A DNA stretch of 64,000 bases from Macrostomum hystrix (taxonomy: Eukaryota; Animalia; Platyhelminthes), in assembly GCA_950097015.1 (NCBI GenBank), contig CATNEN010000005.1, forward strand, positions 3,844,001-3,908,000, given 5' to 3'. The notes under the pieces are model-generated. The model was not told the DNA's origin and searched no databases. It saw nothing but the letters and a program-made list of their open reading frames with translations. Made by a program: the position numbers and the translations under genes. Shown piece by piece: positions 30,382 through 51,061 of this stretch. The stretch's first letter is position 1, and each line of letters opens with the position of its first letter.

Positions 30382-31350
30382 CTGCGAAAAGTTGCAGTTT
30401 TAGAAAAATGTTGATATTTTCAATGCTATTATTAAAATCCCTGCCTTTTAGCAAACACATTTGCCTATACTCGTACTAATCGTTAATTGTTACTACAAGT
30501 AGTACGCTCGTATTCCAAGATTTTATAAGCGCGAAGGGAAGGGCTAATTTACGCAAGTAGCTTAGTACAAATGAACCCAATATTTGCTAAAGCTCTAGAT
30601 GCGTAACACAAGATAGAAATTGTACTTCCAAGTACTAAACAAGTGTTGTTTAGTTGTCCTTAGTGAAAGACACCAAAACTATTCCTTGGTCTTGCAGATT
30701 CAAGCTGTCGAGATCTCGGGCAGAGTTATACAAAGCTAAAGTCAAATTTTAGGTGCTGCACAAAACTCTAGCCATCGATAATCTCGAGAAAGGGGTGTGG
30801 ATGACTGCTTCTCAAGACAGCACGATCAATTAAATATCCTAAATATGACTCACCGATCTTTCATCAGCCGTGAGACAAAAAATTTTCACTTGCTACGAGC
30901 ATATGTTAGATAAAAAATAAACGGCTTTTTGAGATTAATACTGCTATAGAGGTGTCTTTAGAAACCAGACGATATATTCGCTATGACTGTAGAGCAGAAT
31001 ATTATTTGTAGCTTAATGACTCTTTCTGATCTAATAAGACTGACTGGATGTGCGTATGAACTTGAACAATAGCACAGCTAGACGAGGCAGAGTAGTTTGG
31101 GCAACAAAATTACAGACGAGAAAGTTCTCTTTTCCTGGAAATCTAATGCTAACTTTCGCATTGAAATTCGTAGCAAGGCCACAATCATTTGACCACTAGG
31201 CTGCTTACATTCTGGGGCATTCAGAGAGTACATAGTCTATCTGGAAATCAATGGACATGGCTTTTGTACACAAATGTTAGAGTGTGTGCCTGCGTACTCA
31301 AAAGTCAGAATATTAGGAATGGGAAGTAAAATGCAGATTTCCCTCTCCTT

Positions 31351-31526
31351 CAGGGGCGTAGCCAGGATTTTTTTGGGGATATCGGTTTTGGTTCTATCCA
31401 GCGTATCCAGAATAAAAAACAGTTCTATTTTTTACGAGTAATTCATTTCTTTCGAAGAAACTGAATGCGAAAACATTTGAGACATCAAATCGGCCGATAC
31501 ACAGATACCCCCTCGCTACGCCACTG
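31351..31526. mobile_element. hAT-type MITE
   Basis: TIRs CAGGGGCGTAGC / GCTACGCCACTG, with a perfect 8-bp TSD CTCTCCTT (31343-31350 and 31527-31534). Confidence 0.85.
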
Positions 31527-31598
31527 CTCTCCTTGCTGGCTGCGGGTCGACTGTCCACAATCATGCATTAGAGCCTACAGCTTTTGATATTACTAAAC

Positions 31599-31869
31599 CA
31601 GGGGTCGGCAAACTCCGGCCCGCGGGCCAGATGCGGCCTTCGAAGCTCTTAAATCCGGCCCGTTGCCCCCTTCCAACACCAATAGTATCCTGTCTCATCT
31701 CTTCTGTCTCATCTCTCTATGAGAAATTGCGCACTGTTTTATCTCTCTTCTGTCTCTTCTCTCCCTGTGCTCATCTCTCCCCTGTCTCATATTTCTACAG
31801 TCAATGCGGCCCGCTGTCGCTTTTAGGTTCTCTCTTTGGCCAACTAGCTAATAACTTTGCCAACCCCTG
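31599..31869. mobile_element. hAT-type MITE (MER45/Tip100-like ends)
   Basis: TIRs CAGGGGTCGGCAAA / TTTGCCAACCCCTG, subterminal GGCCCGCGGGCC, and a perfect 8-bp TSD TACTAAAC (31591-31598 and 31870-31877). Confidence 0.88.
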
Positions 31870-31949
31870 TACTAAACTAATAAAAAGACTTAATTCGTTT
31901 GTAGACATATTATGTTTGTACTTCTGTGCAAGTATATGCCGTGAACTAA

Positions 31950-33050
31950 TGGTAAAGTCAGAGTTGAACGACGCCGCTGCGAACAGAACCGGCGAGGTCG
32001 GCTGCGTGGCGCCGCCCATCGAGCTGTTGCTACTGCGGGTCCTTCGGATCCTCTGCTTTGCTAGTGCATTTACCACCGCTCTGGGCGGCAAGTGTGGAAG
32101 CGCCGATTACACGGAGGTAAGTGCTGCAGTTCGAGTGCTGCAGCGTGGGCATCCTGTCTGGTAGTGCGACCCTGAAATTCAGCAGGCGAGGAAAGAGCTG
32201 GACAGGCTCCGTCTGAGCAGGCGACCAACCAGTGAGGTGGAGGAGGCACTGGTAGCTGTCTACCTGTAGCGACAGCAAGCTGAGCTGTGTATGACACCAT
32301 CAGCAATGTATCTGCCGTTGGGTCCGAAGCTAGATCTCGAGTGGCCTGGTCCACCATTAAGCTTTGACGGGGCGAAAGCGGCGCCTACAACTAAACTTGG
32401 CTTGGCTGCCGGAGTTATCCGGATAAACGTCGCAATGAGCTGCGTGAGTTCTCGCCGCCATTGTCAACGCGCCACCACCCCCACTGCCTTATAACCTGTG
32501 CCGGCCACTTTGATGATGGCGTCAGATTGTGTTGAACATTGGCAGACGCGGTCCCCGTCCCTCGGTGGTGTGGGTCTCCTACAGACACGCCACGTCGACG
32601 TGCCGGTCCGACAGCATCTTGCACAGTTCAGGCATCTTTGCAGCGACATCTTTTCTGAAACTCTGCGTTGAGTGCAGGTTGCTGGGGGGGCCTCACGCGT
32701 GCAGGCCGGGTCGGGTGCCCACCGTTGATGCTCGGCAGGCCGGTCCGGATGCTCGCTAGGCATTAAGGGTGGGCAGAGGCCGCCGGTTGCTCAGTGGGCG
32801 GCGAGTTTTCCGTGCTGTCTTGGGGCTTGGGGTACGCAGGGCCCGTTGTCGACCAGCATTTTGAGGGTCTTGTGGCCCTTCAAGGAGCACCTCGGAAAGG
32901 CGCAGGTCGTTACTCCGTTACTCGTTACAGTATTCGGGAATCTCGCGTCTCGCTTAAGCAGGCGCTACCGGCTCCCAGCGGCCAGCAATGAGAGAGCCAG
33001 GCCTCATCTCTCCGTAACTACTCCACCTCTGATGCACCTCTGAGGGACCA
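31950..33050 (-). mobile_element. Degraded non-LTR (LINE) relic, AP-endonuclease region
   Basis: Minus strand reads KMPELCKMLSDRHVDVACL*ETH (APE D.ACLQET motif with a stop), then GGGGAL and VVGAAFAP in shifted frames; many stops. Confidence 0.5.
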
Positions 33051-33981
33051 AGGGGAAAAGACCAGCGTTGTGAAAGGTTGAATCTGCTGGGGCTGCCACC
33101 AGCCACCTACGGGACAGCACAACCCACTGGCCCTGACGAAATGGGGCTTCCGCTCTCAAAGAGAATTTACATCCCCAAGGTTCATGGCTGAAAATAGGGA
33201 CTCTATGCGAGGTATCTCAGAATAGAACGGTTCAGCAAGGGCTTTTGTAAAGGGGATTCTTAAGGATGGAGCAAAGACCAAAGATGCGCGTAGAGGGCCC
33301 GACCCAAGGTCGAGTGTCCAGATGGAGACAACCTACGTTCTTCTCTAAGATTAGAATTTACTTCTAGTCACCAGGCCCCAACGATGCAAACACCGGTTAA
33401 GGATAGGCTTCCATGTAATCTAGTTACGTTGACGTCTAGTGAAGTTTTGTAACGTCAATCATACGTTGACCGACGCATGCGTGGGTGGTACATGCGCCAT
33501 AGCAATGGTCATAGGGGTCCCCTTTTGATCGCATGACAAGGATTTCCCGAAGAGCAATGAGCGTAAAAATCACTTTTGACCCGCGTGCTGAGCTTACTCG
33601 CTCTTCGCTATTCAAAATTGACGAAGTAAAGAAGTTTTGTTTTTCGAGATTTAGATTTTTTCAAAAAAGTTCCGGTTAGATTTTAAAACACACTGCGTTT
33701 AATTAACTTTTAACGGAAATTAAAAAATTTTAGTTAAAAAGGGTGAATTAAGGGTAAGAGAGAGTGTGAGTGCGAGCTACCCATATTTTCGCACAATTAA
33801 AGGCTAACCCTTTAATTAGAGTAGAAAAGTGCAAATACGAGGGACTCGCCGATCCGGCGGCGAGGCTCTAGCTGCAGGCTCGACTCGACCGCGGCGACGC
33901 GACTCTGGGTGAGAGTGGTGCGACGGACGAGCGGTGCGGCGACTTTGCCTAGAAATCGGTGACGACGAGAGCGCCGAAGGT

Positions 33982-34372
33982 TGTCAGGTTGTCTTACTGA
34001 ATATTGCTAGTAATGTGACCGATGAGAAGTAACAACGACCATCCAAAGTCAGACGACGGAAAGCCAATGGAGAGTCGAATACGGTACAGCAACAATGACA
34101 AAGGTCCGAATGGAACAGTAAATGTACGCAAACAGAAGGGTACGTCCGGGGTCCGAAGACAGGCACGAGATACGAGCAGCGCACCACTCGCTTAAATAGA
34201 GCCCAGAGTGACGCGCTCACGCCATAATCACGTGATCATTCCGGACTTGACCGAAATTTTGGACAGCCAGATCACGTGCCTCGCCAGCCGATCGGTGATT
34301 GGTTGGTAGGGGATGGGTGCGGGACTGGGAAAGGAAATTATTAATTAGGGGGTGAGGTGCAAGCGCCTGACA
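33982..34372 (-). mobile_element. LTR-like segment with TGTCAGG...CCTGACA termini
   Basis: 7-bp perfect inverted termini, TG..CA ends and an internal TATTTAA on the minus strand; no TSD or PBS found. Confidence 0.35.
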
Positions 34373-34749
34373 GATGGATAAGTCGCAAATCACACAAAAA
34401 GGAGGGAGAGGCGCATTTTAAAAGCAAAACAGAAAAAAAATTATGACCGGAAAGACAGATCAAGGTCACGCAAGGTGAGTCATCGGGGAAGGTAAGAGAA
34501 GGGGCGTGGGAAGGGCCTTGAAGTATTCTAAAAAATTATTAACCCCTAAATTCGCCCTTACATCAACAGTTTTTTCTTGCTTACGTTTCTTAATAACAAT
34601 GACTAGGAATAGTGTCAGCTTCTTATTTACCAAAAGTGAGTAATGCATTCAATCCGATTTAGAAAATCAAACTTGAAAATTAGAATTTCGTTCATTTTGA
34701 ACTATACTGTTCTTTCAGCATAAAGAAATGCTCATAAATTTATACCTAT

Positions 34750-37050
34750 TTATGTGGGTAAAAAGCGAACTAGGATTAGCATTAGGCATCTGTTGGGCCT
34801 TGGGTTCGCCATTGCAGGTGCACTTTGTGCTCTCGTTGCTCGTGTGCTCTCATTGCTGCAGCTGGAATTGCCGACAAAAAGCGACCTGCAGGTCGTCGTC
34901 GAAGAGAACGCAATTGCAGATGGCGATTACCACACCAGCCTCGCTAATAACATCTAAGCGTTCTGGGACGACAAGAATAACATAAGTCTTTCTCCGATTC
35001 AAGTTCGAGACCTGCAGACGGCAGTCAGGAGAGTCGATCAAGCACTGGTACCAGCGCTTGCGCAAGGCAGCAGAGCAGTGTGGCTTCTGAGAACTTAGAG
35101 ACTCGCCGATAACGGACAAAATTTTCGCCCACTGCGACTCTGAAAGACTTCGGAGAGACCTGCTGCAGACCAGCAACATCTCCTTGGCCGATGTGCTAAA
35201 GAAGGCGAGAGCGAACAACAGGCGAGTGTGATGGAGAGGCCAGCGAAGCCGAAACAGCAACTAGCCGCGCTCAGAAGAGACAGGCAACCACAGACACAAG
35301 AGTCGCCGAAATGTGATCGCTGCGGAAGACCCCGACACTCGATGTGCAGCGTAGCACAGGGTAAGAACTGCAGGAGCTGCGGAAAGCTCGGGAACTTCGT
35401 GCGGGACTGCCGATCTGGACAAGGAGCACCCCGGAACCACGCGAATGTCGTTGCCACGCTGCAGGGCGAGACGGACTACCAAGAGCTCGACGGGCCAAAT
35501 GCGGAATCTTTGAGTTAGACCAGCACAAGCAACCGGCGCAAAAATTAGCTGAGATCAACGACAGCAGACTGCCTGTGCTCATCGACAGAGGAGCAGCGCG
35601 CTATTTGATCAACAGGGCAACGTTCGAGAGTTTTCGACAGAGGCCACAGCTGCGCCTAACATCAGACAAGCTGTTTGCGTATGGATCGGACCGACCGATG
35701 CAACTACTGGGCCAGGCAGCAATAGCCATCAACATATTTGACCGACTAGCAAACGCCTTATTTAATGTGGTGGAAGGCAGATGCATCATCATTATTTGCC
35801 GACAGACAACCACGCACATGGAAATCTTGAGAGTCGGGCTGACTGGGCTGACACCGACTCTCAGCAGACTCTCACACCGACTCTGAGCAGCAGTTGCTCC
35901 AGATATCAGATGCTGAGTCTGCGGTCGACAGTCTCCTGAGCGACACAAGAGCCAGCGGCGTGCCTCAAGGCGATGTGGCGGACAATGGCAAGGTGCTACG
36001 CAGGTACCTCAACGTGTTCAGCGGCATCGGATTCTTCATCGGTGCCCCCGCAAACATCTACCTGTCTGATGGTGCACGTCTGGTCTGCCATGCGCCATCC
36101 AGAGTGCCAATCCACCTTGCAGATGCTGTTGACAAGGAGCTGCAGCTATTGAGCAAATCAATGGCCACGAGTCGCTCGTATGGTCATCGTGCACAAGAAA
36201 GAGCCAGGTGAGGTGCGCATCACACAGGATTTGCGCCACGTCAACCGGTATGTCATCCGTGAGCGCCATCAGATTTGAGAAAGTGACTGGAGACATCATC
36301 GCAAAGGCAGCATCGTCTTCTCCGAGCTAGACATCGCAAAGGCATTTTTCCAGGTACCCGTGGCTGAAGGCTGCTGCAACCTGTTGACGTTCTCGGCGCC
36401 TCGGGGACTTCGACGCTTACGATGTAAATCGGCTGTGCATGGGTCTGTCAACATCCCAGGAGATACTGCAGAGTGTGATGAGCCGAGTGCTAGCCGGGCT
36501 GCGCAACGCGAAATGCATTCACGACAAAGTGCAGGCTAGCCCGCTCCAGCATCAAGTTCATGGAAATGCGGCTGACATCAAGCAGAGTCCAGCAAAGTTG
36601 CCGCTGTCAAAGATTTCAAGGAGCCGGAGACAATCAGCCAGCTATGCTTGTTCCTCGGCCTAGGAAACTATCTCGCAGAATTCACTCCGCAGCTAACCAA
36701 GGTCAGAGAGCCGCTACGTCTGACAAGGAAGAGTGCAGACTGGCAGTGGGGCGCTGATCAGGCCAGCTCCTTCGCTCAGCGCAGTATCGTGGAGCCGAAA
36801 ACTCTGGCCTTCTTTGACCTGCGGCTGTGGTGGATGCTGATCTTGGACGCTGGAACAACCGGACAGGGCGCCATCATCTCGCAGGTTCAGCGAGACGGCA
36901 CTGGACGACTGGCTTCTGGCCTACCGAAACACGCCACATAAGGCCACCCGGCGCACACCGGCCTGATGCTACTGTTGGGCCGGCAGCCAAACGACGTCAT
37001 CCCGGCTGCGCGGCCCTCCCAGCGGGCCCACACCAATGAACGTCAGCTGC
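34750..37050 (+). mobile_element. Degraded Ty3/Gypsy LTR retrotransposon internal region (gag-protease-RT-RNase H fragments)
   Basis: Gag-like RFKFETCRRQSGESI..LRKAAEQCGF; Zn knuckle CRSCGKLGNFVRDC; protease LIDRGA; RT LDIAKAFFQV and MGLSTSQEILQ; RNase H DAGTTGQGAII. All are broken by frameshifts and stops. Confidence 0.8.
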
Positions 37051-39475
37051 GAGAGAAAGACGTCAATGCCAAGGACGTGATGAAGCAATGAGCAGACGCT
37101 TGCAAGACGGCGACCACGATGACATGAAATCCGGGTCAGCGACTCGGTGTTGCGACGGCGAATCAGCGCCAGTAAAACGCAGACGCCATTCGAGAGCGGG
37201 GCGTGGAATGTCGATCGGGTGGTCGGAAACTCGTTGTTGCTGCTTTGCGATGGTGCCACCTGCTGGCGCCACTGCACGGCGGTCAAAGTCGTCAGCCCCG
37301 ATCCGCCCAGCTCTACTGTTGATGGCGCACCGCCAGATCTTCCGCCCAGGGCCGGGCGGCAGGCCCCCGCGGCTCTGTGCCCCCACCACGAGCTGCAGCA
37401 GTATAAGGATTGAGCACTCAGTGCAGGGACTGTTCGTGAATTCATGCTGACGAATTGTTTTGTGTGTGTGTGTCAGTATTTTATTTGAGTTTCTCAATAG
37501 TGCTAGAGTTGCAAATATTTTTCTTTCGTTTTAAATACGTTTCGTAGCGTTTTTTTTCGAAGTCTTTTACTATTTTCTCCCGTCGTGAGCGTGTATTCCA
37601 TTACTATTAGCTCTTACCTACTTACATAGCCTGAATGTACGCTAGGCTATGTACACCTGGCTCCAGGTGCTAATGACCGAGCTTAGGTGGGTTTCTCTCC
37701 CGGCACAAAATATATAGACTTATGCTCAATCAATGTAGAAGGTAGAAGTCAAGCTAGGTACTCGCTACCAAATTTCGGCCTTGGTCTCAGTTATTACACA
37801 CCCCATGTCTGGGCCCTGGCGACTTTATTCCTGCGCTCCAGGTCTGCGCAAAGTTCCCGCGACCTCCCTCGACCTCAATCATCTCTCTAGATTCCCGTGG
37901 GTCGGCGAACTGGGTGTCTCCAGGGCGGATAACGCTACCCTCCCAGTCGGACTCTCTGACCTGAGCCATGAGCCCGTAGGGACACAAGACAGTCCTAAAA
38001 CGCGGCTTATAGAGATCGTTTCAGGACATTTAAATACGAGAATAGCTAAAAATTGGTCTTGCTTATAAGATACGAATCTCGTATGAGATTCAAATTGACG
38101 CCAGATCGTTTGACATTGATAAGACAGCAACACCAAAATGACCCAGAGCTTATCGTTTCTTTTGGACTTAGAGACCAAGTGAAGTTTGAGCTTACATTGA
38201 CGCCGCATGGTACGGCATAGCGAAACATTGGGTGCGCAGCTGTACTTTAGACTTCTGTGCTTAATAAAGAACTTTTTACTGAGTCCAAACCTATTCAATC
38301 CAACTGCCACTAAAAAAGCTAAAAATAACTAGTAGTGGTCCTTGATTCAAACTTTCTAGCTTGGTGATAAGATTAACATTTTGCCAGCTTTGCGAATGTG
38401 AGTCTGCGCCTCCGCCCAGCACCAAGCTCATGCTCATACGCACGAATAACCCGTCACTTAATAGAAAAAAAACTATTTAAGCCACATTTATTCTGTACTA
38501 AAAGTGTAGCGAAAATATTTTTTACAGGCGCTGAAGCAGTTTGTAATTTTAAAAGCAGTTGATTATTCTGTCTAGCAGGTGAGACTTCCCAGTCTCACGA
38601 AGATCGGTGAGTAATGTTGATGATATTCGACACACTTTTGTATACGTTCGTTTACCAATAACAGACTGCTGTCTTATATATAGGTCTGTCCTTAATCCCT
38701 TATAATTGTAAACCTTCAGGATTAGTCCGTCCGTTTTGCACTAACGATTGAATGTCTTAAATTGACTAATTGTCCAATTGTATAAGTTTTTTTAAAACTT
38801 AAATTAGTTCATCTTCAATTCTAGAGATCGATAAATAAGTGAAGCGAGTGAAATCTTACCTTATTTGGAGTTAAAAATGTAATTAGTTTTATGAGTTTAA
38901 ATAGCTTTTCAATCGTGAGTTAGCAGTTATAATTTATAACATGATTCCAGGGACTACGATTTATTCAGAAAAATTTATGATTCCGATTTTTTTAAGTTTC
39001 CTCTGGTCTTAATTTTGCTCAAAGAAAGTCAAAATTTTCACCATAAAATTTACCATAAAACCATAAAATATGCTTAGAATATCACTCTTACTTTCTTAAG
39101 TCCATTTTTCTCGAGAATCTTTAAGAGAATTTCTGGAGTACATTTTAAAGCAATTTTGCAAGAAAATTCTTACTGGCATGTGTAGTGTCTGCTTATTTCC
39201 GCTTCGCTCGCTACCCCAATCTCTAAACGCTATATATTTTCAGATTTCCCCTGCTGCTATTGAACCGATTGGTAGAACACCGACCCCGGTGAATAGTGAA
39301 TAGTCGCTAGCTTTAAATTCCTCACGCTCCAGCTAGGACATTCATTTTATTACACATGTTAGCTTGCAATTCAGCAATAAGAGATGTACACGACATAAAG
39401 GAACAAGCTAAACAACATATATCTCTCGTCAATGAGTAAAGTTAATAGGTTAATTGGTAATAATGTAAATTAAAT

Positions 39476-39830
39476 TTAAATTACTCTAGTTTTTTCACCG
39501 CACCATGATGGCATCAAGTTGTGAACAATTCTTATGGTCTGCTGGAATCTCAAGAGGTCTCGCAATAGAACCGGAGAGTGATAATTGAACCCAAGTAAAT
39601 TCCGCGAAATTAAAATCTTTATTTTGATCTCTCCACGTGTGTCCAGGTCAAACAAATAAACGTCTTCATTGCAAATTGAAATTATGAGTTGTAAGATAGA
39701 ACCTACTTTCAGACTCGCAAGGTCGTTCGAGCATGGCAAGCTATTTAGCCTCTTAAACTGCTACAATACATCTGCCTGGCGTTTCGATAAGTCGATATGA
39801 TGTTGCACTCCCTTGGCATTTAAGCACCTG
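39476..39830 (-). pseudogene. Possible relic exon of a 3'-5' exonuclease (EXD1/Egalitarian/WRN-exo-like)
   Basis: LQLIISICNEDVYLFDL...LLRDLLRFQQTIRIVHN resembles the LQ.AT...VYLFD...L..ILE...I.KV.HD pattern; the upstream frame has stops. Confidence 0.35.
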
Positions 39831-40021
39831 CTGAAAGAAAGAAACATTTGAGACCATAGGGAAACTTAGAAAATCGGATTTAAAAACTTTTCTGCACAAT
39901 CGCCCGTTTTCCGCCCCGAGTATGGATTAGATCCTGCACGATTCATTGTTTCAGATTGAACTGCACATGCTTGCATATTACTTTACTTTCTTTTAGTATT
40001 TTGAGGAACAACACTCTACAA

Positions 40022-40235
40022 GCACACATGCACACATATAAGGTGAGCAGGTACACACTCACACAGGTGTGAACATCTGCCCAGACTTTCTCATCGTCAG
40101 GCAGTGTGCATTCTCACTGCGCCTTGGGGATTGGCCTGATCGTGTGCATAAACAGCACAACAAGCCCCTTAGACTTCTCTCCTGGTCGCAGATTCGAGCT
40201 CAGGGACATTGGTGTGGGAGTCACGCACAAAGCAG
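40022..40235 (-). mobile_element. SINE family A copy (diverged)
   Basis: CACACAGGTGTG..CAGACTTTCTCATCGTCAGGCAGTG..TCGAGCTCAGGGAC match the other copies. Confidence 0.7.
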
Positions 40236-40685
40236 ATTCCTTCTCGCTTTTGTGGCTACTCAGTGAACAAAGCTTGAAGGTATTGCTGGTCATGTTTCAA
40301 AACGGAAAATGTATAATTTACTTTTTTGTATTGCAGTATGGATCATTGGACATGCGTGCCGAGCCTTTCTCTGTTGCCCTTATGATTTTATTTATCGTTT
40401 AGATGCTTCGTTTCGTTCTGAACAAACAAAATCGTTCAGCATCGTCCTTCAAATAGAATTAACAAAAACAAGCGTTGGGGTAAAATTACTTTAGAAATTA
40501 TTCCGAATTGCAAACTTCTGGAAAGGCTACATTATACCACAAGCATCACCTTCACATAATCTTTGTCATGCTACTCGCAGAAGAAATGAACGTTTAGTTA
40601 GCAACAATTTATTGCAAAAGTAGTATTGTAGAGTGCTGAGTAAATAGTTTATGCAAAAAGCTATTTCAATCAAAATTCTTCGCAG

Positions 40686-43600
40686 ATGGCGTCACTGCCG
40701 CCTCCACTCATGCGCTCTGCGTCCGGGGCTCAGCAGGTCAGGCTGTGCAGCGTTCAGATCACAGGACTGGCACCTGGTGTGACACCTGAAAAGCTTCGCG
40801 CAAGCTTTAACCAACGAGCCGGTAGGTTTGTGGTTCTCGATGCGACCAAACAGCGGAATAAAAATGCCTGGTGCGCCTTCCTCAACGAACTCACTGAAGA
40901 GGAGGCGGATGAATTTCAGAGAAAGTGGAACAAAATGACACTTCCCGGAACATCCAACAAAGTAGAATGTCAGGTAAACAGAAGTCGCGACGCTTCTGCA
41001 AAAAATCAAAATTTGAATCCGAAGACCCCTTTCCAAAAGCCGGAGAAAGCAAATGTACAAATACTTGGTCTGCCGCCTAATTCAAGAGCAGAAGACCTGG
41101 CCTCGAGATTAGGACAAAAAGCTGGCCAATTCACGGTGCTTCCTGAGGACAAACAGCGCGATAAAACTTCCTGGTGTGCCTATCTGAACGGTCTCACAAT
41201 TGATGAGGCCAGAGAGTTTCAAACGAGGTGGAACAACCAGCTGATACCAGGAACAGAAACTAAACTAAAATGTCAGGTGCTTTCGAACAGAGAAACAGAG
41301 GAACCCAAAGTAGCTAAAACTTCTCAGCAGCCAAACTGCAGTGTCAAAATTTCAGGACTACCACCAAATGTTTCAATTAGCTTCCTGAAAACAATATTCC
41401 GACAGCGGGCCGATCAGTTTGTTGTGCCTCCTGAATCCAAACAGCGAAACAAGAACGATTGGTGCGCTTTTATAAATGGACTTTTAGACAGTGAAGCGCA
41501 AAGTTTTGCATCTCAATGGGATCTCTACAAAATAAAAGACACCCAGTTTGTCCTGCATTGTAAGGTGAAGAGGCCAGTGAAAGCAACACCCATCAATCTG
41601 AGCAATAAACCTGGCCCTAGCTCAGTCAGTAGCACACTTTTGAAGCAAAGCGAGAGACTCGGGGCAAGTGTTACAAGCTCCATGTCTTCTGTGTGCACAA
41701 CACAAAGCGATTTGCCTAAGAGAAGGGGCACGCTGTGCAGACACAATATCACGGGCACCTGCAAATTCGGTGATGACTGCCAGAACATTCATTTTGCCTG
41801 CCCTTCGGACAAAGATTGCGATGACGATGAGTGTTGTCTAGGACACTCGCCAGGCGTGAAGACAGAAAAAGAAGCGCAGGTGGAAGGAGAAATGCGTCTG
41901 TGCATCTTCTATCGATCAGGTATATGCAAATACGATTCACAGTGTCAATTCAAGCACATCGGTTGCTCCGAAGGTGAAGAATGTGAAGATTTTACTTGCT
42001 ATTTCGGACACCCACTTGGCTGGGGAAGCGCCTTCTCAGATCCCAACGAATGCTCGGTGGACTGTGATGACTTGCAGTGCCAGAAGAGCCACCCGATTGG
42101 TCGGAGTAGGCCTTGCCGATTCGGAGACAAGTGCTTCAATGTCGAATGCCGCTTCTTACACCCAGTCAGCCGAAACATCTGTGATGTCGGAGACATGTGC
42201 GAAGAATTCGACTGCACAAAGCTGCATTCCGCATCACGGAAGAAGCTATGTGGGCAGGAGGCCAAGTGCTCGGATGTCCATTGTGAGCTGCTTCACCCCA
42301 TCAGTAGACAGGTCTGCGAAAACAAGAAGACTTGCTCCGACTTTGATTGCAAGAAGCTCCACGACCATGGAAGATTAAAGAAGTGCCGGTCGGGTTCAAA
42401 ATGCAAGCTTGCATTCTGTCCTTGGCTTCATCCTAAAAATAGAGCTGTTTGCAAGTTGGGTGAGAAGTGTGATCAGATCGATTGCTCTGAGCTGCATCCG
42501 CCCGGAAGAGTCAAGCCTTGCAAGTTTCGAGAGCGATGCTGGAATCAAAACTGCGAAGGACTGCACCCTGAGGCCTGGAATCCATGTCCAGACGGTCTTG
42601 GATGCCGCGATGTTAGCTGCTCTTGTACTCACTCTCCAAGACGACCCGTGCCCTGTCCTCAGGGAAGCGACTGCTCAGACAGGGAGTGCAGCCGCCTTCA
42701 TCCGGAGATGAGCAAGGTTCAGCACGCCTTCAAGCCACTGAGAAGCTCATCGCTCAAATCGGAGCACCAGAGAAGAATCGATAGAGAGGCCAACCAACTG
42801 CCAGTGCTGAGTTGTCGGGACGAATTCCTTCAACGACTCCAGAAGGAGAAAGTTCTGATCGTCAGAGCGGAGACGGGCAGCGGCAAGACCACCCAGCTGC
42901 CACAGTACGCGGCGGAGTACTTCGGAGGCCTCGTTATCTGCACACAGCCGCGAGTGATGGCTGCAATCTCCATCGCTCAGCGAGTGGCCGACGAGTTCGA
43001 CGGATGCGATGTGGGCGAGTCCGTCGGCTTCAAGGTGGGTGGCGACAACAGTACACTGGGCACAGACATTATGTTCATGACGGAAGCCTGTCTGATTCGA
43101 TATTGCCAGGACAACGATTCTTTGAACAATGTATCCGTTCTAATCATTGATGAAGCCCACGAACGATCGCTCAACGTTGACATTGTCCTAGGCCTTGCCA
43201 AGCTCATTCGCAATAAGAGGCCTGACAACTTTTACGTAGTCATCGCATCAGCCACAATCGATCCAAGGCAATTCAGAGACTTTTTCAACTGCGATGTACT
43301 TGAGATTCCAGGTAGAATGCATATCGTCTCACTGGAATATATTCCTCCTACTGCAGAAGGGAACCCAGACAAGTTCATTATTAGCCATCTGGTGCCAAAT
43401 CTGGTTAGAGTGCTGACGACTCACACTGAAGGCTACGCTCTCGTGTTTCTTCCAGGTGAGAAGGAAATCCAGGAGGCAATCAAGGCCTTCGAGCAGCAGC
43501 GAACGGAAGACAACTGGGTCGCGCTGCCTCTCTATGGATCACTGCCAAGAGATCAGCAGATGAAGGTTCTCGACTTCAAGCCCAGTCAAGATTCAGATCG

Positions 43601-46600
43601 CCTGATTGCGTTTTGCACCAACGTAGCTGAGACATCGCTTACCATCAACGGAGTGAGGTTGGTGGTCGACTCCGGACTGGCCAAGGAGTCCAGGTTCGAC
43701 GCAAAGAGGCGCATCACAGTGCTTGAGCTGAAGCAGATTTCACAATCCGCTGCGGATCAGAGAAAGGGTCGCGCTGGTAGAACTGCTCCTGGGCACTGCG
43801 TGCGGTTGTACGCTGAGGAGACAGTGAGAAATGCGCAGTTTATTCCTGAAATCCTGCGTTCATCACTTGATCTGGTTATTTTGCAGCTCGTCAAGCTGAA
43901 GCTAAGGCCACTTGACTTTCCATTTCTCGATAAACCAAGCGAAGATATGCTTGTCTACTCGTACCAGACTTTGGTGGATCTTGACTGTCTGACTAGAGAG
44001 AATTCAGGGCGTCTGTCTCAGGTTGGCGAGCTATTCGCTGAGCTCGGACTCGATCCTCGTCTTAGCGCTTTCGTAGCCAGAGCGCATCAGCGCTTCGATC
44101 AGCTGGGTCTGGCGACTACGATTGCTTGCATTCTCACAGCTCCTGGCAGTCTCTTCTTCCTCGGACGCGACAAAGAGAAAAGTGCGGCTCTGCAGAAGAG
44201 AGCCTTGGAGGTTTTTGGTTACGAAAGCGACATTCTGTACGAGGTCAGCGTTTTCGATTCCTGGGCCTCTTCCGGAAAACTCGTTGGTGGCAGGTGCGCT
44301 GACTGTGGCAAGGCAGCTAGAAAGTTCCAGGACAGCTGTAGGTCGTGCCGTGTTGGACACAGCAACGCAAACAAACTTAACAACAAGGTCATAGAGCACA
44401 TTGACAAGTCACGAAACTCTATCCTGAAAACTATTAAGAAGAGCAGGTGGTTCTCCGAGTGCCAGGTCGAGAGTAACTGCGAGGACGCGGTTTTCGTCGT
44501 GAGCAGCTGCCTTGAGCAAGTACTGCCTGAGCAGGTGTCATGCCTGCTGGTACGGCACCTACCTTCAGAGGGTGTGAAAATCCTCACCTCCGACGTTCGA
44601 GCGCGAATTTCAAACACATCAGTTTTCGCGCAGCGCGCGCAAGACTGCCAGTACTTTATTGCTATGCGAGTGATTCAAGCTGTGTCTGGGATGTACATGG
44701 TGGACTGTCTGCACCCAGTGAGAGATCCAAAGACTATTTCTGATAGACAATCGCACCCACTGCAAACGCTCTTCACTGAGCAAAACGTAAGCGCTAATTT
44801 TTTCAGACTTCTCAAAGATGAGATTTTTAGCAACAAGTCGCAACTCACAGAAGAACAGAGAAAGTGGATTGTTCTGTCGCACAATGCCGACGAAGCAAGC
44901 TTGCACGTCTTCGGTAAAAGCACGGACAAGCAGAAGCTTCAAACTGTTTTAAAGTCTTTATTAATCGACAGGAGGCGTCGCTTATTGAAAGAAGAGACTG
45001 AAGTTGCAATTAAGGAAATTTACAAGGTCACACTCTCTGGTGGCCTTCGAGTGGAAAAATTTATTTTCGTTAAGTCAACACGTTCTGAAAATATCTCTTT
45101 GCGACCACATCAGCATGAAAGCGATGATGGAGAATGCATCGGTACTAGCAATGGCCTAACGCAGCTTCTCTTGACCGCACCCTTTGGCACTGATGAATCG
45201 CAAATCCGCTCAATAAGTGAATCAATCGACAAAATTCGCCATGTCAACAAAAACCGACGCGGTCGCGAAAGCAAAAGCTTTAAAATATTAAACTTGCCTG
45301 CCCATTGGACAGAGGCCAATGTGAAAGAGTTAATAAGCCTTGCTGAGTTCGGACAAGCGAGTACAATGATACATTTTTACCCACCAAAGCAAGCCAGCAT
45401 AGGGTCATCCAGTGCGCTTGTTAGAGTTGGCGGTGCGGATCAAGGCGACTCACTGGCCAGTTTGTCGAAGGTTGTTCAGTCAATTGAGCCGTTTCAAATT
45501 CAGCTGCAAAGAAAGAGTGACGGAAGGCCCTTCACTAAAACCGTTTCGCCAGAAGTAAAGTGCTATGAGGAAAAGGTAACGCAGGAGAAGTTTGACATAA
45601 AGTTTCGCGACTCGAAAAGTGCGATCAGCTTCTTCAACAAGGCTCGCGAGGGATCGATTCCAAACTTCTTAGCCGAATGGTGCGCTTCAGTTTATGTGTC
45701 TCACAGCAATCTGTTTCCTGATCTTGAGGACCTCATTGTACGCTCATTCGATGCCACTGTCACACACGCTGAAAGCAAGAAACCCGATGGTACGCTGGAG
45801 ATCAGACTGTTCGGTCCTGATCATGACAAAACTAATCTTGTGGCTAACAAGCTTCGAGGACTGTTCTTACCGACCACGATTCGCTACTTCTCTAGCAAAG
45901 AGAGGACGCTGTTTTTCGAAATCAAGAATTCTGGCCTCTTCGATCGCTGGATGAACGAGCTGAAGCTCGCGTGTGAATTTAAAGACGATCGGAGCTTCCG
46001 AGTTTTCGGACCAAAAGTAAGCCAAGGCACCCTCATGCGGAACATTGCTGACGAGTTCGCTAAAATCGAGAGTCGATATCGCCTCATTCCCCTGGACGCT
46101 GCCACAGCTCAGTTGTTTCGAAGAGGACTTGCTGGAGACTCGATGTTGAAGGATCTGCAGAAGAAGTGGGATGACAAGTGTTTCATCAAGTTTCTGTTCC
46201 ATAGCTCAGAGATAGAAATTTACGCTCGAAACGATGCACAAGTTATTTCACCTTGTGTCAAGGAACTGACTGATCTAATTAGCAAGCTTGGTGGCAAAAA
46301 GAAATTCGGAACAAAGACTTGCGTCCTCTGCAATTCTGAAACAGCTACAGAGAGTTTCTTTGTATGCGGTCACTCGTTCTGCAGATGCGTCAAAAGCTGG
46401 CTTCAAAGTGCCACGGCGACCCCAATCTGCTGCCCGAAGTGCCAGACGGAGATCTCCATTAATGAAATAAAGAGGCTAGCACTGGACTTTGAAGCCCTCG
46501 TCAAACAGATTGTTGCTCAGCACGTTGCTCAAGATAAGTCAATGGATATCGCTTGCTGTATCGTGAGAGGCTGCGACGGCTTTGTAAAGAAAAACGCATA

Positions 46601-47744
46601 CGAACAATGCTCCAGCTGTCAGCACTGGGTCTGTGCCGATTGCAAAACAGTCGACGACATCCTTCATAAGGACAGAGACTGCGCGCAGTTTAAGTCAGCA
46701 AGCACAATGGTAGGAAGGAATTCGCAACTGATCAAAGCAGCCGAAGTATTCGTCCGGCAGAACTGGCCCGCAGATATGCCACAAATCTGCGCGATCGATC
46801 CGAATCCCGGACTGCTTAGCGACCCTCAGTGCCCCGCGTTCAAAGCTTTTGTTTGCGGTTTGCTTTCACTGGGTCGTGGCGCTTTGAGCGAATCTGATGG
46901 ATTTTTCGCCTACCATGGAAGTTCTGCCGAGGCACTCAAGCAAATCTCTCACTATGGATTCGATCCGAAAAGACGATCGGGCCAAGCTTGTGGTCCAGGA
47001 GAATACTTTGGTGTGTCTCCAAGCATTTCAAGAGGCTACACACGAAACTGCGGCGCGATGATTGTTGCCTTCTTGCTGCAAGGAGGCCCTATCAGTCATC
47101 AGCCCGGGTTTTGCTACGTTGTGAACAACCCAACTGATGGCTCAAAGGCGTTTAATCTCCCAGTTTTGGTTGTCTACTTTGATTCTACAACTCCGCGAAT
47201 CGACTTTATTAAACCCTCCTGCGTAAGCTCTGATAGAAGCGACAACGACAAATGGACTTCGCCATTCAGATGGCATTGGTTGAAGGACAATGGCAGCTTT
47301 GAGCCCTACAATGACGATATTAATCGTCTTCTAGAAACACACTACGATGCGCACAAGACGAGGGGCGGACCTTCTGAGATTACTACTCCTGCGATAATAC
47401 GCTACGTTGATGACATTCCACAGCAGTACATCATCAGCTATGCTGTAAACACACAGAAGAACTCTAAAACTGGCTATATTCGCCCAATTCAGCGCCAACA
47501 AGTTCACGTAGCCAGTGTGACGAACACCTGGGAGTTCCGTTCTGAGAGTGGCATCTGGCAGCCGTTTGAGAGCCTGGCCCAGCCGCGCATTCAACAGGCG
47601 TACCAAGCCTACATCCAGGGAGCAGGGAGCTGCAGGGTGGCAGTTCAATTCCCAGGCCGTCCGGAGACATATGAATTGGACTTCCTACTAGGTCAGCAGA
47701 AAAACCTGCAAAGCGGAACCATACGGTTCATCAGGAAGAACTAG
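40686..47744 (+). CDS. 2352-aa intronless multidomain protein (copy 2, inverted paralogue of 23353-30381)
   Basis: Uninterrupted 7059-nt ORF with the same domain order and motifs (GSGKT ~42876, DEAH ~43149, RING ~46319, ART HG ~46914, WWE from ~47265); AATAAA ~100 bp after the stop. Confidence 0.93.
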   Translation: MASLPPPLMRSASGAQQVRLCSVQITGLAPGVTPEKLRASFNQRAGRFVVLDATKQRNKNAWCAFLNELTEEEADEFQRKWNKMTLPGTSNKVECQVNRSRDASAKNQNLNPKTPFQKPEKANVQILGLPPNSRAEDLASRLGQKAGQFTVLPEDKQRDKTSWCAYLNGLTIDEAREFQTRWNNQLIPGTETKLKCQVLSNRETEEPKVAKTSQQPNCSVKISGLPPNVSISFLKTIFRQRADQFVVPPESKQRNKNDWCAFINGLLDSEAQSFASQWDLYKIKDTQFVLHCKVKRPVKATPINLSNKPGPSSVSSTLLKQSERLGASVTSSMSSVCTTQSDLPKRRGTLCRHNITGTCKFGDDCQNIHFACPSDKDCDDDECCLGHSPGVKTEKEAQVEGEMRLCIFYRSGICKYDSQCQFKHIGCSEGEECEDFTCYFGHPLGWGSAFSDPNECSVDCDDLQCQKSHPIGRSRPCRFGDKCFNVECRFLHPVSRNICDVGDMCEEFDCTKLHSASRKKLCGQEAKCSDVHCELLHPISRQVCENKKTCSDFDCKKLHDHGRLKKCRSGSKCKLAFCPWLHPKNRAVCKLGEKCDQIDCSELHPPGRVKPCKFRERCWNQNCEGLHPEAWNPCPDGLGCRDVSCSCTHSPRRPVPCPQGSDCSDRECSRLHPEMSKVQHAFKPLRSSSLKSEHQRRIDREANQLPVLSCRDEFLQRLQKEKVLIVRAETGSGKTTQLPQYAAEYFGGLVICTQPRVMAAISIAQRVADEFDGCDVGESVGFKVGGDNSTLGTDIMFMTEACLIRYCQDNDSLNNVSVLIIDEAHERSLNVDIVLGLAKLIRNKRPDNFYVVIASATIDPRQFRDFFNCDVLEIPGRMHIVSLEYIPPTAEGNPDKFIISHLVPNLVRVLTTHTEGYALVFLPGEKEIQEAIKAFEQQRTEDNWVALPLYGSLPRDQQMKVLDFKPSQDSDRLIAFCTNVAETSLTINGVRLVVDSGLAKESRFDAKRRITVLELKQISQSAADQRKGRAGRTAPGHCVRLYAEETVRNAQFIPEILRSSLDLVILQLVKLKLRPLDFPFLDKPSEDMLVYSYQTLVDLDCLTRENSGRLSQVGELFAELGLDPRLSAFVARAHQRFDQLGLATTIACILTAPGSLFFLGRDKEKSAALQKRALEVFGYESDILYEVSVFDSWASSGKLVGGRCADCGKAARKFQDSCRSCRVGHSNANKLNNKVIEHIDKSRNSILKTIKKSRWFSECQVESNCEDAVFVVSSCLEQVLPEQVSCLLVRHLPSEGVKILTSDVRARISNTSVFAQRAQDCQYFIAMRVIQAVSGMYMVDCLHPVRDPKTISDRQSHPLQTLFTEQNVSANFFRLLKDEIFSNKSQLTEEQRKWIVLSHNADEASLHVFGKSTDKQKLQTVLKSLLIDRRRRLLKEETEVAIKEIYKVTLSGGLRVEKFIFVKSTRSENISLRPHQHESDDGECIGTSNGLTQLLLTAPFGTDESQIRSISESIDKIRHVNKNRRGRESKSFKILNLPAHWTEANVKELISLAEFGQASTMIHFYPPKQASIGSSSALVRVGGADQGDSLASLSKVVQSIEPFQIQLQRKSDGRPFTKTVSPEVKCYEEKVTQEKFDIKFRDSKSAISFFNKAREGSIPNFLAEWCASVYVSHSNLFPDLEDLIVRSFDATVTHAESKKPDGTLEIRLFGPDHDKTNLVANKLRGLFLPTTIRYFSSKERTLFFEIKNSGLFDRWMNELKLACEFKDDRSFRVFGPKVSQGTLMRNIADEFAKIESRYRLIPLDAATAQLFRRGLAGDSMLKDLQKKWDDKCFIKFLFHSSEIEIYARNDAQVISPCVKELTDLISKLGGKKKFGTKTCVLCNSETATESFFVCGHSFCRCVKSWLQSATATPICCPKCQTEISINEIKRLALDFEALVKQIVAQHVAQDKSMDIACCIVRGCDGFVKKNAYEQCSSCQHWVCADCKTVDDILHKDRDCAQFKSASTMVGRNSQLIKAAEVFVRQNWPADMPQICAIDPNPGLLSDPQCPAFKAFVCGLLSLGRGALSESDGFFAYHGSSAEALKQISHYGFDPKRRSGQACGPGEYFGVSPSISRGYTRNCGAMIVAFLLQGGPISHQPGFCYVVNNPTDGSKAFNLPVLVVYFDSTTPRIDFIKPSCVSSDRSDNDKWTSPFRWHWLKDNGSFEPYNDDINRLLETHYDAHKTRGGPSEITTPAIIRYVDDIPQQYIISYAVNTQKNSKTGYIRPIQRQQVHVASVTNTWEFRSESGIWQPFESLAQPRIQQAYQAYIQGAGSCRVAVQFPGRPETYELDFLLGQQKNLQSGTIRFIRKN

Positions 47745-49257
47745 CTGCTTCGTTTGACCTTTACTTAGTACTTACAGTTCTCCATTGGTCGACAAATGTC
47801 CTGAATGTCCCAGCGCTCAAATGTAAAGTGTTCAGAAGATTTAATAAAATCATTCAAGATTGCATCGATAAAGGATAGTAACGAACATATATAGAAGTAG
47901 GAATTATATAACTACTAGGAAAATTCATGCATTCTCACTTTAATGTTGCGTCTTATCATGGATAGAGATCACGTTACTGCGTGTATTACGAGCTAGTATA
48001 TTTCAGGTAATTTTTTTAATTTGAATAACAATTGTTTGCTGGTGAACGGATGCAATATTTTCGTTTTTCAAGTTTTTTCTCAAGTACCACTGGGAGTAGA
48101 ATGACGGGAAACTACATTTCTTAGAAAAATAACTGAAGGCTGGTTTTCGCGATATAATACACGACGGAGATAGAAAGAGGCAGATAGAAAGCTGTTCTAT
48201 TGATTGCCTAACATGTTGCTTATCCGAACGTTATAAAAGTTTTGTACATGACCTATCATAAGTCTGAAATTTAATGCACCACAGACAAATTGAATTTATT
48301 TATTTATACTTTTTCTAAGAAACGTAGTTTCCCGTCCTTCTACTCCGAGTGGTCCCTGGTTTTTCTTTTAAGAAACGCTATAATATTTACCTCATATAAT
48401 ATTTCTATGATTATTTCTTATCTTTGATTTCGCTTTAATTTTCGATATAAAATCACTTTTAATAAATTAAGACTTCTAGTAAAATATCATCATGATCATT
48501 TTTTAATAGGATGGAAGTATAATAACTATTGAGTGGCAGAGGCATTCGTTAAATAATTAAATTATATTTCAAATCGCACGATATTTTACGAGGCTCATAA
48601 TTACGAAATGCTTGTTTTATTCCGAAAATATTTTTCCAATTTTTTTATTCCTGAATCTGAAAGCGCGTATCATTTGTTCTGAAATATATCATGGAATAAA
48701 CTCAACACATAAATTAATCCGAAAAATTCAAAGACGATCGCACCAGATTTTTTCGTTGTATAAAATTAGTTGATCACGCAATTAATTTTGTGATTTATTA
48801 TGGGCATGATACAATGTTCACAGAATGAGCAACGCGTGGACAAAACAGAGTATTGAACTTAGACTGTTGGGTAGTTATTGGGTCCTGATTGAGTGATGTA
48901 TTTTAGAGATTTTAACTCCAGACTCTATTTCAGATGTTGGAAGAATATCTTTGGGAATCGAAGTGAAGGTCAGAGGTGCATGGGGGCGTGTCTTAAGAGC
49001 TCTGAGCAGAAATACATTTTATGTCACCACAACTATAGACAGATAGACTTCAGCAAGATATCATGTTAATACTCAGTTCTTCTGCAAGACAATTCCATTG
49101 CTAGGATTGTACTATTTTATTATAAAAAATGTCGGGTTGTATCCATGCAGGCTTAAATCATGGACCAATTTGAACTACGAGTAAAAGATGGACAAGGAAG
49201 GACACAGATTTCTAAATTAACATATTTGATTGTCTGACATTCGGTTGAGTCCATGAG

Positions 49258-50255
49258 TCAAAGCTTTCTCCAAGCCTCAATCTCGTCCTGAGTGCCCTCT
49301 GGCGGAAATTGCACCTCGAATCGAAACGGCTCGCCAATTCTCAGCAACGGATTCACGTACCACTTGTCGTTGACTCCGTCTAAGAAGCGATTCAAATGCG
49401 GCAGTCGCAGCAGTTCTGGCAGCGAACGGACCAGGAAGTAACTCTCGCAGACGACCTGGCAAGGGCTGCTGTGTGCCTTCGAGTTGGATTCTGCTTCGTC
49501 TAATGTGAGGAAAACGGAGATGCTCTGACGTTGGTACACATGAGGGTGCATCTCCTGCGTGAGATTGGGAATCGGAATTAAATAGAGGCCGTGCAGGTAG
49601 ACTTTGCAGTTTTGTTTAATCGGAGCAAGTTTCATCTAGGTACAATTACTTCGATGATATAATCAAGACTTATTATTCGACGATCTTTACAAAAACCAAA
49701 GAAAGAAACAATCGGATCTCCAAAGAATCAAATGACGTCGAAGAGAAAGACAAGACTCTGCTGTAAAATTGGTATCAGAATAATCTAATCCAAATTGTAT
49801 CAATTGGATGTCCACAGACTGAACAGCTGTACGACAAGGCTTTGATAGCGATACGCATTAGCTTTGGAGAATTCCGTTTGAGGTACAGACCATTTGAAAT
49901 CAATTCAGATCAGATTAGGCTTTGATAGCGATACGCATTAGCTTTGGAGAATTCCGTTTGAAGTACAGACCATTTGAAATCAATTCAGATCAGATTAGAA
50001 GCGAATAAAACGAACCAATTGATCCAAGATCTCCAGTTGTTCGTCGTTGACAACAAAGACTTCGCCTTGGACTAGTTGTCCCTGGCCAGGAAATGGAAGC
50101 AGAAATGGAATGTTATACCTGCTGCCAATCACCAGGGGGTAGGGTTCCGTCGTGATTGCCTTTCCAACAAAGACTGCGTCAGACAGAAGGCGATTGTTGA
50201 AGTTGCCGCGCTTCAGAGTGCCGTAGACAAAGACCCGATGCTCGGCGGTGGTCAT
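49258..50255 (-). CDS. GGACT: Gamma-glutamylamine cyclotransferase-like protein (~178 aa). Exons 50255-50016 and 49554-49258
   Basis: VFVYGTLKRG motif, YPLVI..YNIPFLL and V.GEVF; the GT-AG phase-0 junction gives LDQL|EMHP with the catalytic-position Glu; ends CESYFL..LPHL. Confidence 0.88.
49837..49998. repeat. Direct tandem duplication of 80 bp in the GGACT intron
   Basis: AGGCTTTGATAGCG...CAGATCAGATT occurs twice with one mismatch. Confidence 0.95.
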
Positions 50256-50380
50256 GACGGTTGAGCTGTGTGGAGTGAGGACGGGATCCAAGCTTGTAAT
50301 TTGAGATTGCCAGGTTGACCAATTTATTATTAAGCCAAGTGAGACCCAAGGCATTGTGACCGATGCCCAGAAGAAGCTCC

Positions 50381-50599
50381 CAAATCCACGGTGGAACCCA
50401 CAAATCCACGGTGAAACCCACAAATCCACGGTGAAACCCACAAATCCACGGTGGAACCCACAAATCCACGGTGGAACCCACAAATCCACGGTGAAACCCA
50501 CAAATCCACGGTGGAACCCACAAATCCACGGTGGAACCCACAAATCCACGGTGGAACCCACAAATCCACGGTGAAACCCACAAATCCACGGTGGAACCC
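50381..50599. repeat. Minisatellite, 20 bp unit (CAAATCCACGGTG[G/A]AACCCA), 11 units
   Basis: Directly visible, ~125 bp upstream of the GGACT ATG. Confidence 0.97.
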
Positions 50600-51061
50600 T
50601 TAAATTCTTGGTGGAAATCTGCAGAAATGTCTCGACCCTAATTTCATAGTGAAACATCCTGCAAACTAGCCATACCATGTTAAATGACATATTTTATGGA
50701 AATATAACAATCTAATAAATTGCTTTCTAAGAAATATATTTCATCAATAAAAAGAGCATTTAAAGTCTTAATACAGCAACGAAGCAGTTGTCATACAGAA
50801 ATAATCTTAATAATAAGTGAAAATCATAAAAAAACTATCGCGATTAAAAATTTCATTTAATATAAATACTCTAAAAAAGTTACCATAACTAGGCATGACG
50901 AAGACACACATTTACGAGTATATATTTTAAAAATATAAATATTTGGATTACTCACTAATATATACTACAATTTCCTGTCAGCACTGGCGCACTAGGTGAC
51001 AGTGGGTGGGCCCGAAGCCAACGAGGAGGCAATTCTGCATATTCCGCTGAATTCTAAGCAC

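Follow-up and report, generated by a model that had tools for sequence, protein, structure and literature searches.

The 64,000-nucleotide (nt) stretch of Macrostomum hystrix DNA analysed here (hereafter the window; contig 5, positions 3,844,001-3,908,000, of an assembly of 220 Mb in 42 contigs) contains a head-to-head (inverted) pair of giant open reading frames (ORFs), copy 1 and copy 2, both of which are intact. The two copies are nearly identical along most of their length; however, one internal block of about 700 nt is far more divergent, with a ~95-fold step in synonymous divergence between this block and the longer of the two arms that enclose it. No other donor for the block is present in the genome, and the mosaic is supported by sequencing reads. 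At the level of pattern, the pair is very probably best explained as old inverted duplicates, the coding sequence of which has been homogenised by interlocus gene conversion around a single divergence island; the mosaic itself is observed, and conversion is the homogenising process that we infer from it. Copy 2 is laid out as three RRM-like modules (RRM1 to RRM3), a CCCH finger array, a DEAD/DEAH-type helicase, a RING/IBR-like region, a weak PARP-like region and two WWE domains. The genes, the island and its arms are as follows.

Copy 1: 23353-30381, minus strand; single-exon (intronless) ORF of 2,342 amino acids (aa), with the same architecture as copy 2; based on the ORF list, alignment and Pfam.
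Copy 2: 40686-47744, plus strand; single-exon (intronless) ORF of 2,352 aa; based on the ORF list, Pfam and transcript-like contigs in the sequencing runs X2 and X7.
Divergence island, copy 2: 41078-41785, plus strand; RRM2 after its strand b1, a linker, RRM3, a further linker and the first three Cys of CCCH finger 1; 72.9% nt identity to copy 1.
Divergence island, copy 1: 29312-29989, minus strand; 30 nt shorter; elsewhere in the genome it matches copy 2 only, at 72%.
5' homogenised arm, copy 2: 40679-41077, plus strand; an acceptor-like TTCGCAG, the ATG, RRM1 and strand b1 of RRM2; partner of 29990-30388 in copy 1.
5' homogenised arm, copy 1: 29990-30388, minus strand; partner of 40679-41077.
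3' homogenised arm, copy 2: 41786-47754, plus strand; from the His of finger 1 to 10 nt beyond the stop codon; partner of 23343-29311 in copy 1.
3' homogenised arm, copy 1: 23343-29311, minus strand; partner of 41786-47754.

In protein and codon alignments of the two copies, 181 of 663 aligned nt differed within the island (72.9% identity), and only 26 of 6,348 nt differed outside it, 4 in the 5' arm and 22 in the 3' arm (Fisher p 8e-165 for the density of differences). The island also carries indels at five sites, all of them in frame (multiples of three), with a net difference of 10 codons. Both edges are abrupt: on the left, an identical run of 73 nt is followed by 11 differences within 32 nt, and on the right, 27 differences within 74 nt give way to an identical run of 95 nt. 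The longest identical run inside the island is 37 nt, compared to runs of 480-685 nt in the 3' arm, which is gap-free and 99.6% identical across 5,969 nt; the 5' arm contains 4 differences per 392 coding nt (40686-41077). At the protein level, a global alignment contained 124 differing columns (substitutions and indel positions), and 109 of these lie at approximately residues 141-369 of copy 2; the remaining 15 comprise four before the island (residues 29, 107, 132 and 136) and eleven after it. An original prediction, made from the DNA letters alone, had described a heavily substituted block with indels (net 10 aa) and sharp boundaries in an otherwise near-identical pair, and the alignments reproduce that description and place the block within 1-2 nt of the predicted coordinates (41078-41785 and 29989-29312). 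The prediction had also treated the block as a unit of RRM2, RRM3, linker and first CCCH finger; this holds for its content, but not for its borders, since the left edge falls inside RRM2, behind the first strand, and the right edge inside the finger, ahead of its His.

Synonymous (dS) and nonsynonymous (dN) divergence and their ratio (w) were estimated by the Nei-Gojobori method. The island had a dS of 0.73, a dN of 0.26 and a w of 0.35, compared to 0.0077, 0.0026 and 0.34 in the 3' arm and 0.034, 0.0066 and 0.20 in the 5' arm; thus, the synonymous divergence of the island is ~95 times that of the 3' arm (0.73 vs 0.0077), while w is alike. The step is shared by the parts of the island, with dS values of 0.58-0.94 and w values of 0.28-0.41 for RRM2, RRM3, linker 3 and finger 1; the highest w among the parts (0.87, with a dS of 0.38) was found in linker 2, which is 16 codons long. 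No part of the island showed a w above 1, and the w of the whole island was no higher than that of the 3' arm, so positive selection was not detected in it. Among 40-codon sliding windows, a single one, which straddles the right edge of the island and covers finger 1, exceeded 1 (w 4.9); this value is uninformative, because dS is nearly zero there and most of the 40 codons lie in the homogenised arm. These data show that both copies of the island are under purifying selection; derived residues are nearly equal in number (19 in copy 1 vs 20 in copy 2), and neither block is decaying. Since synonymous sites are ~95 times more diverged at an unchanged w, the block is distinguished by its age, and not by hypermutation or diversifying selection. 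The age of the pair is therefore set by the island (dS ~0.7) and not by the 99.6% identity of the rest.

The DNA outside the two genes was completely different between the copies, a point added here to the earlier account. Homology extends from 7 nt before the ATG to ~10 nt after the stop codon, and 3 kb of flanking DNA of copies 1 and 2 gave no blastn match at a word size of 11. Unalignable flanks are as expected for neutral DNA of this age, and homology limits at -7 and +10 fit an age of at least dS 0.7 and not a recent segmental duplication. When the 220-Mb genome was searched with the N-terminal protein, the DNA of the copy 1 block and the finger/helicase part, only these two genes were recovered and no third copy was found; generic helicases matched the helicase domain only. 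With two matches genome-wide, there is no third paralogue able to donate the block. The earlier proposal that the block escaped homogenisation is thus borne out by a dS of 0.73 against 0.008 and 0.034 in the arms, by unrelated flanks and by the lack of a third copy in the genome.

An outgroup for the pair was obtained from Macrostomum lignano. An exhaustive profile search of 1.8 billion representative proteins yielded one true relative, M. lignano PAA84961.1, with its cluster mate PAA62682.1, and a second search with the first 800 aa recovered the same M. lignano cluster only; the other five matches of the profile search were rejected as relatives, being short repeat or finger-only matches. 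The relatives correspond to BOX15_Mlig016460g1/g2, which are annotated as 'RNA helicase' and are 56-65% identical to the window genes. As in the window genes, RRM-like modules are followed by the CCCH array and the helicase, and in tblastn searches of their loci the match continues through the C-terminal part; unlike the window genes, they have two RRM-like modules instead of three, their paralogues are in tandem and their gene models are frameshifted. The two loci concerned, L017 and L018, are 97.5% identical and represent homeologues or alleles, with models broken by frameshifts at ~13667 (L017) and ~15020 (L018). The M. lignano gene lies in tandem, not inverted (L017:7-1806 and L017:10001-16785; L018:10001-16780); in L017, the upstream tandem copy is 96.7% identical to the downstream one over its C-terminus and 3' flank, and the N-terminus of the upstream copy is unannotated and lies outside L017. 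These tandem paralogues are young, because the 3' flank is common to both.

Synonymous divergence between M. lignano and the window genes is saturated (dS ~1.9). In the island, dN was 0.257 between the copies compared to 0.53-0.58 to M. lignano, which places the island after the species split, at about half the depth of that split. Elsewhere in the protein, dN to M. lignano was 0.18 (helicase 0.128, fingers 0.30) with a w of ~0.10; between species, too, the island evolves ~3 times faster than the rest and is the fastest part of the protein. There was no sign of acceleration after duplication, since the w of 0.35 between the paralogues is about the usual rate of the region, roughly 3 x 0.10. 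The word 'hypervariable' in the original prediction is accordingly not upheld: dS is raised ~95-fold at an unchanged w (0.35 vs 0.34), as in old divergence accumulated at the usual pace of this region. The two RRM-like modules of the M. lignano gene correspond to RRM2 and RRM3, and the first of them is equally similar to RRM1 (49-51%) and to RRM2 (48-53%); RRM1 may therefore be a lineage-specific internal duplication, or may have been lost in M. lignano. Linker 3 of copy 1 lacks 10+4 aa that are present in M. lignano and copy 2, and finger 1 of M. lignano is of the copy 2 type, with a spacer of the K-F-x-D-D type.

Altogether, the pattern would be accounted for if the coding sequence of the head-to-head copies had been repeatedly homogenised through interlocus gene conversion, and if ~700 nt, beginning directly behind the first RRM2 strand and reaching the third Cys of finger 1, had dropped out of this exchange, so that the island and the unalignable flanks would retain the real age of the duplication. 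Exchange could presumably no longer start inside the island, because the longest identical run there is 37 nt and five indels interrupt the alignment. Conversion tracts that bridge both arms would erase the island, and these would probably be removed by selection, on the argument that the N-terminal heads came to differ functionally module by module. Some selection against bridging is plausible, because conversion appears to recur often enough to keep the divergence of the arms down to 0.4-1%; the proposal that the island is maintained by selection in addition to a mechanical barrier is nonetheless tentative and somewhat less likely than not. Synonymous divergence differed between the arms (0.034 in the 5' arm vs 0.0077 in the 3' arm; Fisher p 0.046 on synonymous sites), and the greater divergence of the 399-nt 5' arm relative to the 6-kb 3' arm fits homology-length-dependent conversion and separate histories of the arms.

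However, it should be noted that several points weigh against gene conversion with an escaped island. The closest relative reached was M. lignano, which is more distant than the duplication, and conversion was deduced from the pattern and not observed. A break inside the island is repairable from the other copy via the 399-nt and 6-kb arms, and a mechanical barrier alone is thus an incomplete explanation; either selection or the rarity of such repair may account for the persistence of the island. The G+C content at third codon positions (GC3) dips in the island (0.43-0.46 vs 0.50-0.59), which could reflect GC-biased conversion in the arms; this evidence is weak and unspecific, as GC3 also dips, to a lesser degree, in M. 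lignano (0.50 vs 0.54) and other parts of the gene are equally low.

The foremost alternative is a strong form of the original prediction, in which the block is a specificity module driven apart by diversifying or positive selection, giving two sensors with different RNA targets on one effector body. This explanation bears on the RRM-like modules and on finger 1, which were delimited as follows.

RRM2, copy 2: 41046-41285, plus strand; aa 121-200; RRM fold, based on AlphaFold2 and Foldseek.
RRM3, copy 2: 41337-41570, plus strand; aa 218-295; RRM-like repeat, 40-47% identical to RRM1 and RRM2.
CCCH finger 1, copy 2: 41736-41792, plus strand; C-x7-C-x5-C-x3-H, ancestral-like.
CCCH finger 1, copy 1: 29305-29361, minus strand; same ligand spacing, with four derived spacer or flank residues (copy 2 positions 358, 360, 361 and 364), including an extra Cys.

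RRM1 was the sole module with Pfam support (20.8 and 23.7 bits vs the RRM_1 (PF00076) cut-off of 20.7); RRM2 alone had no Pfam match, and RRM3 of copy 1 reached 16.5 bits against RRM_1, below the cut-off. The three repeats are mutually 36-52% identical and have in common the motifs V-x-I-x-G-L-P-P, K-Q-R and W-C-A-F/Y-L-N. An AlphaFold2 model of RRM2, built from ten repeat sequences, had a predicted local distance difference test score (pLDDT) of 85 and the b-a-b-b-a-b topology, and in a Foldseek comparison with the PDB the 50 best matches were all RRMs (50/50; template modelling (TM) score 0.53-0.72, best E 9e-4). A 420-aa model was poor (pLDDT 51) and was used for topology only; it predicted b-a-b-b-a-b in all three repeats at low confidence, with a pLDDT of 60-79 for RRM3. 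Finger 1 matched PF18044 below threshold (E 0.027), and its spacing, C-x7-C-x5-C-x3-H, is common to copy 1, copy 2 and M. lignano. The original prediction, which described a canonical finger 1 in copy 2 and an additional Cys in that of copy 1, is correct; the additional residue lies in the x5 spacer.

In an RRM, the canonical RNA platform is formed by the central strands b1 and b3. In these repeats, the b1 motif is V-[QEK]-I-x-G-L, in which position 2 lacks an aromatic residue, and the b3 motif is W-C-A-[FY]-[LI]-N. The paralogues differed at 6 of 35 residues in strands b1 and b3 compared to 47 of 123 elsewhere (p 0.025), and the most changed elements were the a1-b2 loop (9 of 12) and the two helices (17 of 39). 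Such a concentration of change in helices and loops would reflect the usual constraint on the fold core and does not point to a re-tuned RNA surface. Nevertheless, judged from the sequences, binding could be influenced by the loop changes, by the altered finger spacer and by a charge reversal (E/K) between the copies at the second position of strand b1 in RRM3.

With M. lignano as the outgroup, derived residues were distributed between copy 1 and copy 2 as 8:3 in RRM2, 5:12 in RRM3 and 4:0 in the finger (permutation p 0.009; the partition by module is post hoc and the counts are small). This module-by-module distribution would favour some functional divergence, and it is the first of the observations in keeping with a specificity module; the others are the loss of the ancestral K-F spacer and the gain of a Cys in finger 1 of copy 1, the E/K reversal in RRM3, the apparent transcription of both copies from unrelated flanks, and the frequency with which the arms must convert (dS 0.008-0.03), which makes a neutral 700-nt escape between them hard to start. 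The same explanation is opposed by the overall w of 0.35 with no sub-part of the island above 1, by synonymous sites that are equally diverged, such that age explains the block without mutation pressure, by a rate in the island that equals the rate of the region between species, and by conservation of b1, b3 and the K-Q-R...W-C-A-F/Y-L-N core between copies, repeats and species. Divergence driven by selection is therefore doubtful as the origin of the block.

Somewhat more doubtful still is a combined proposal, in which conversion would hold a 2,000-aa helicase/RING-IBR/PARP-like/WWE body identical and selection would keep two RNA-recognition heads apart, each specialised in its own modules (RRM2 and finger 1 for copy 1, RRM3 for copy 2). 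If true, this would amount to a two-allele-like recognition system fixed as paralogues, with one effector, two recognition cassettes and unrelated promoters, in an animal lineage for which no such RNA sensor has been described so far. An island held by selection would also mark the residues by which this uncharacterised, lineage-restricted RNA-binding helicase/ART-like protein chooses its targets, and the gene pair would amount to a natural domain-swap experiment; should missing homology alone preserve the island, the pair would be a textbook case and nothing more.

A second alternative is that the pair duplicated recently (dS ~0.008) and that one copy then acquired the block from a diverged source since lost, either a third paralogue or an introgressed or homeologous allele. 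An origin in one step would explain both the flat dS profile (0.58-0.94 across sub-parts) and the sharp edges, and recent duplicates do occur in the Macrostomum lineage, as seen for L017 and L018 (97.5%) and for the tandem copy in L017 (96.7%). However, the donor is absent genome-wide at both the protein and the DNA level, the unrelated flanks would require breakpoints at -7 and +10 of the ORF, and the unequal arms (0.034 vs 0.0077, p 0.046) are better fitted by separate conversion histories than by one young duplication. Import is thus improbable.

The remaining alternative, that the block was mis-assembled or that the arms owe their identity to consensus polishing across paralogues, found no supporting evidence and is extremely improbable, given that contigs from two studies match the copy 2 block and both junctions with 0 differences and end exactly 30 nt into each shared arm, that read depth is 1:2:1 over block, shared arm and unique flank, and that the copy 1 stretch has word shares of 0.88 and 0.76. 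The possibility raised with the original prediction, that one version of the block is a segment unsupported by reads, is set aside by the same contigs and depths. These comparisons were made between four public runs and positions 39000-42300; run X1 was taken as genomic because intergenic DNA was covered, and the run records state no library type. X1 contained a 768-nt contig over 41048-41815 with 0 differences and a depth of 80, corresponding to the island and 30 nt of each arm, and the same 768-nt contig was present in X2, a run from another study. Contig ends at these points are as expected where an assembly graph has a second branch. Depth in X1 was 80 in the island, 160 in the shared 3' arm and 84 in unique upstream DNA. 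For copy 1, the word shares of the stretch 29200-30500 were 0.88 in X1 and 0.76 in X2, which are not due to copy 2, because copy 2 shares only 39% of the stretch with it; across runs X1-X5, word shares for copy 1 were 0.49-0.88.

Intergenic DNA was uncovered in X2 and X7, and X7 contained a contig of 7,182 nt that runs from approximately the stop codon of copy 2 to base 40685 and continues for 120 nt that are unmatched by the adjacent genome. The acceptor-like TTCGCAG stands directly before the ATG in both copies (40679-40685 and 30382-30388), and homology between the copies begins exactly there. The 120-nt non-adjacent extension suggests a spliced 5' end, in cis or by spliced leader. From these data we infer that X2 and X7 represent transcriptomes, with copy 2 transcribed and spliced at its 5' end and with transcription of copy 1 in X2 at least. 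X7 is labelled as another organism; however, it is identical across 1.6 kb and resembles the copy 2 transcript, and it does not represent an independent species. A run from another species, X9, matched only on high-copy repeats and gave nothing for the gene. Contig depth in X2 was 53 in the copy 2 island vs 55 in the shared arm (41786-47744), although contig depth is a poor measure; on these values, copy 1 would make only a small contribution to the shared arm, and expression of the two copies, which have unrelated flanks, may be unequal.

The gene is unusual and restricted to its lineage, and the evolutionary pattern is a known one, of which the pair is a new and very clean instance. Persistence of divergence islands in the face of interlocus gene conversion has been described for the GOT1 paralogues of Tigriopus californicus (PMC3728101) and for a CEACAM1 paralogue of ruminants (PMC7042247), and mosaic divergence has been modelled for HMA4 of Arabidopsis halleri (bioRxiv 10.1101/2025.10.29.685298). 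Those cases and the present one share linked paralogues that are mostly near-identical, a single internal older stretch with sharp edges, and candidate functional divergence. The pair described here differs in being inverted and single-exon with homology that coincides with the ORF to within 10 nt, in its extreme contrast (~95-fold dS), and in the content of its island, which spans two RRM-like domains and a CCCH finger within a multi-enzyme protein of 2,350 aa. As a natural case of partial escape from concerted evolution it is very clean, with a 95-fold step in dS within one exon and edges resolved to less than 75 nt. A literature search returned no report of gene conversion in Macrostomum and no description of the protein architecture of copies 1 and 2.

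With regard to that architecture, Pfam searches with the whole proteins identified two C-terminal WWE domains, DEAD, Helicase_C, CCCH fingers and a borderline RRM_1. Isolated pieces gave sub-threshold or borderline scores for RING (21.0 bits, at the cut-off) and IBR (21.1 bits), and the PARP-like region scored 19.1 bits against PF00644 (cut-off 26.7). A PDB sequence search gave no match for the PARP-like region and only a marginal WWE match for the C-terminal 503 aa. The finger array appears Nab2-like (E 8e-6), and its later CCCH fingers are above the Pfam threshold (zf-CCCH, 29.2 bits).

Among vertebrate RNA-binding mono-ART proteins, PARP14 combines N-terminal RRMs with WWE and ART domains, and PARP12 and ZAP combine CCCH fingers with WWE and ART domains. 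Copies 1 and 2 resemble these proteins in having an N-terminal RNA-binding head (RRM-like or CCCH) together with WWE domains and a PARP-like region, and a weak match to the third RRM of PARP14 was found (E 0.13). Unlike PARP14, PARP12 and ZAP, however, copies 1 and 2 show no membership at the level of sequence (PARP 19.1 vs 26.7 bits), their WWE domains are located at the extreme C-terminus, they have an added DEAD/DEAH-type helicase and RING/IBR-like region, and their fingers appear Nab2-like.

The remainder of the window was also surveyed. The DNA between the two start codons is as follows.

Spacer: 30389-40678, no strand assigned; 10.3 kb, with nothing common to the copies; a decayed retroelement and high-copy repeats.

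The decayed retroelement occupies 35200-37000 and contains a weak RT_RNaseH_2 match at 36648-36941 (18 bits) and, read by eye, an ORF with Cys-His knuckle-like residues at 35228-35518. Upstream of copy 2, positions 39999-40220 and 39222-39443 are very high-copy repeats, with summed contig depths in X1 of ~720,000 and ~23,600, respectively, compared to ~80 for single-copy DNA; both have many divergent copies and internal deletions. Near the start of the window, four different minisatellite arrays lie within 9 kb (1407-3115, 3600-5599, 6900-7528 and 8848-9896), with periods of 19, 21, 24 and 18 nt and 26-95 copies each; the arrays (1407-9896) are strongly strand-skewed, and long ORFs on either strand overlap them. 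Exon-like ORFs elsewhere in the window encode LIM domains (10166-10720; 104.7 bits), a tetraspanin-like segment (18710-19456; 29 bits, below the cut-off), a GGACT/AIG2-like segment (49995-50690; 49.5 bits) and WD40 repeats (55052-55672; 138 bits).

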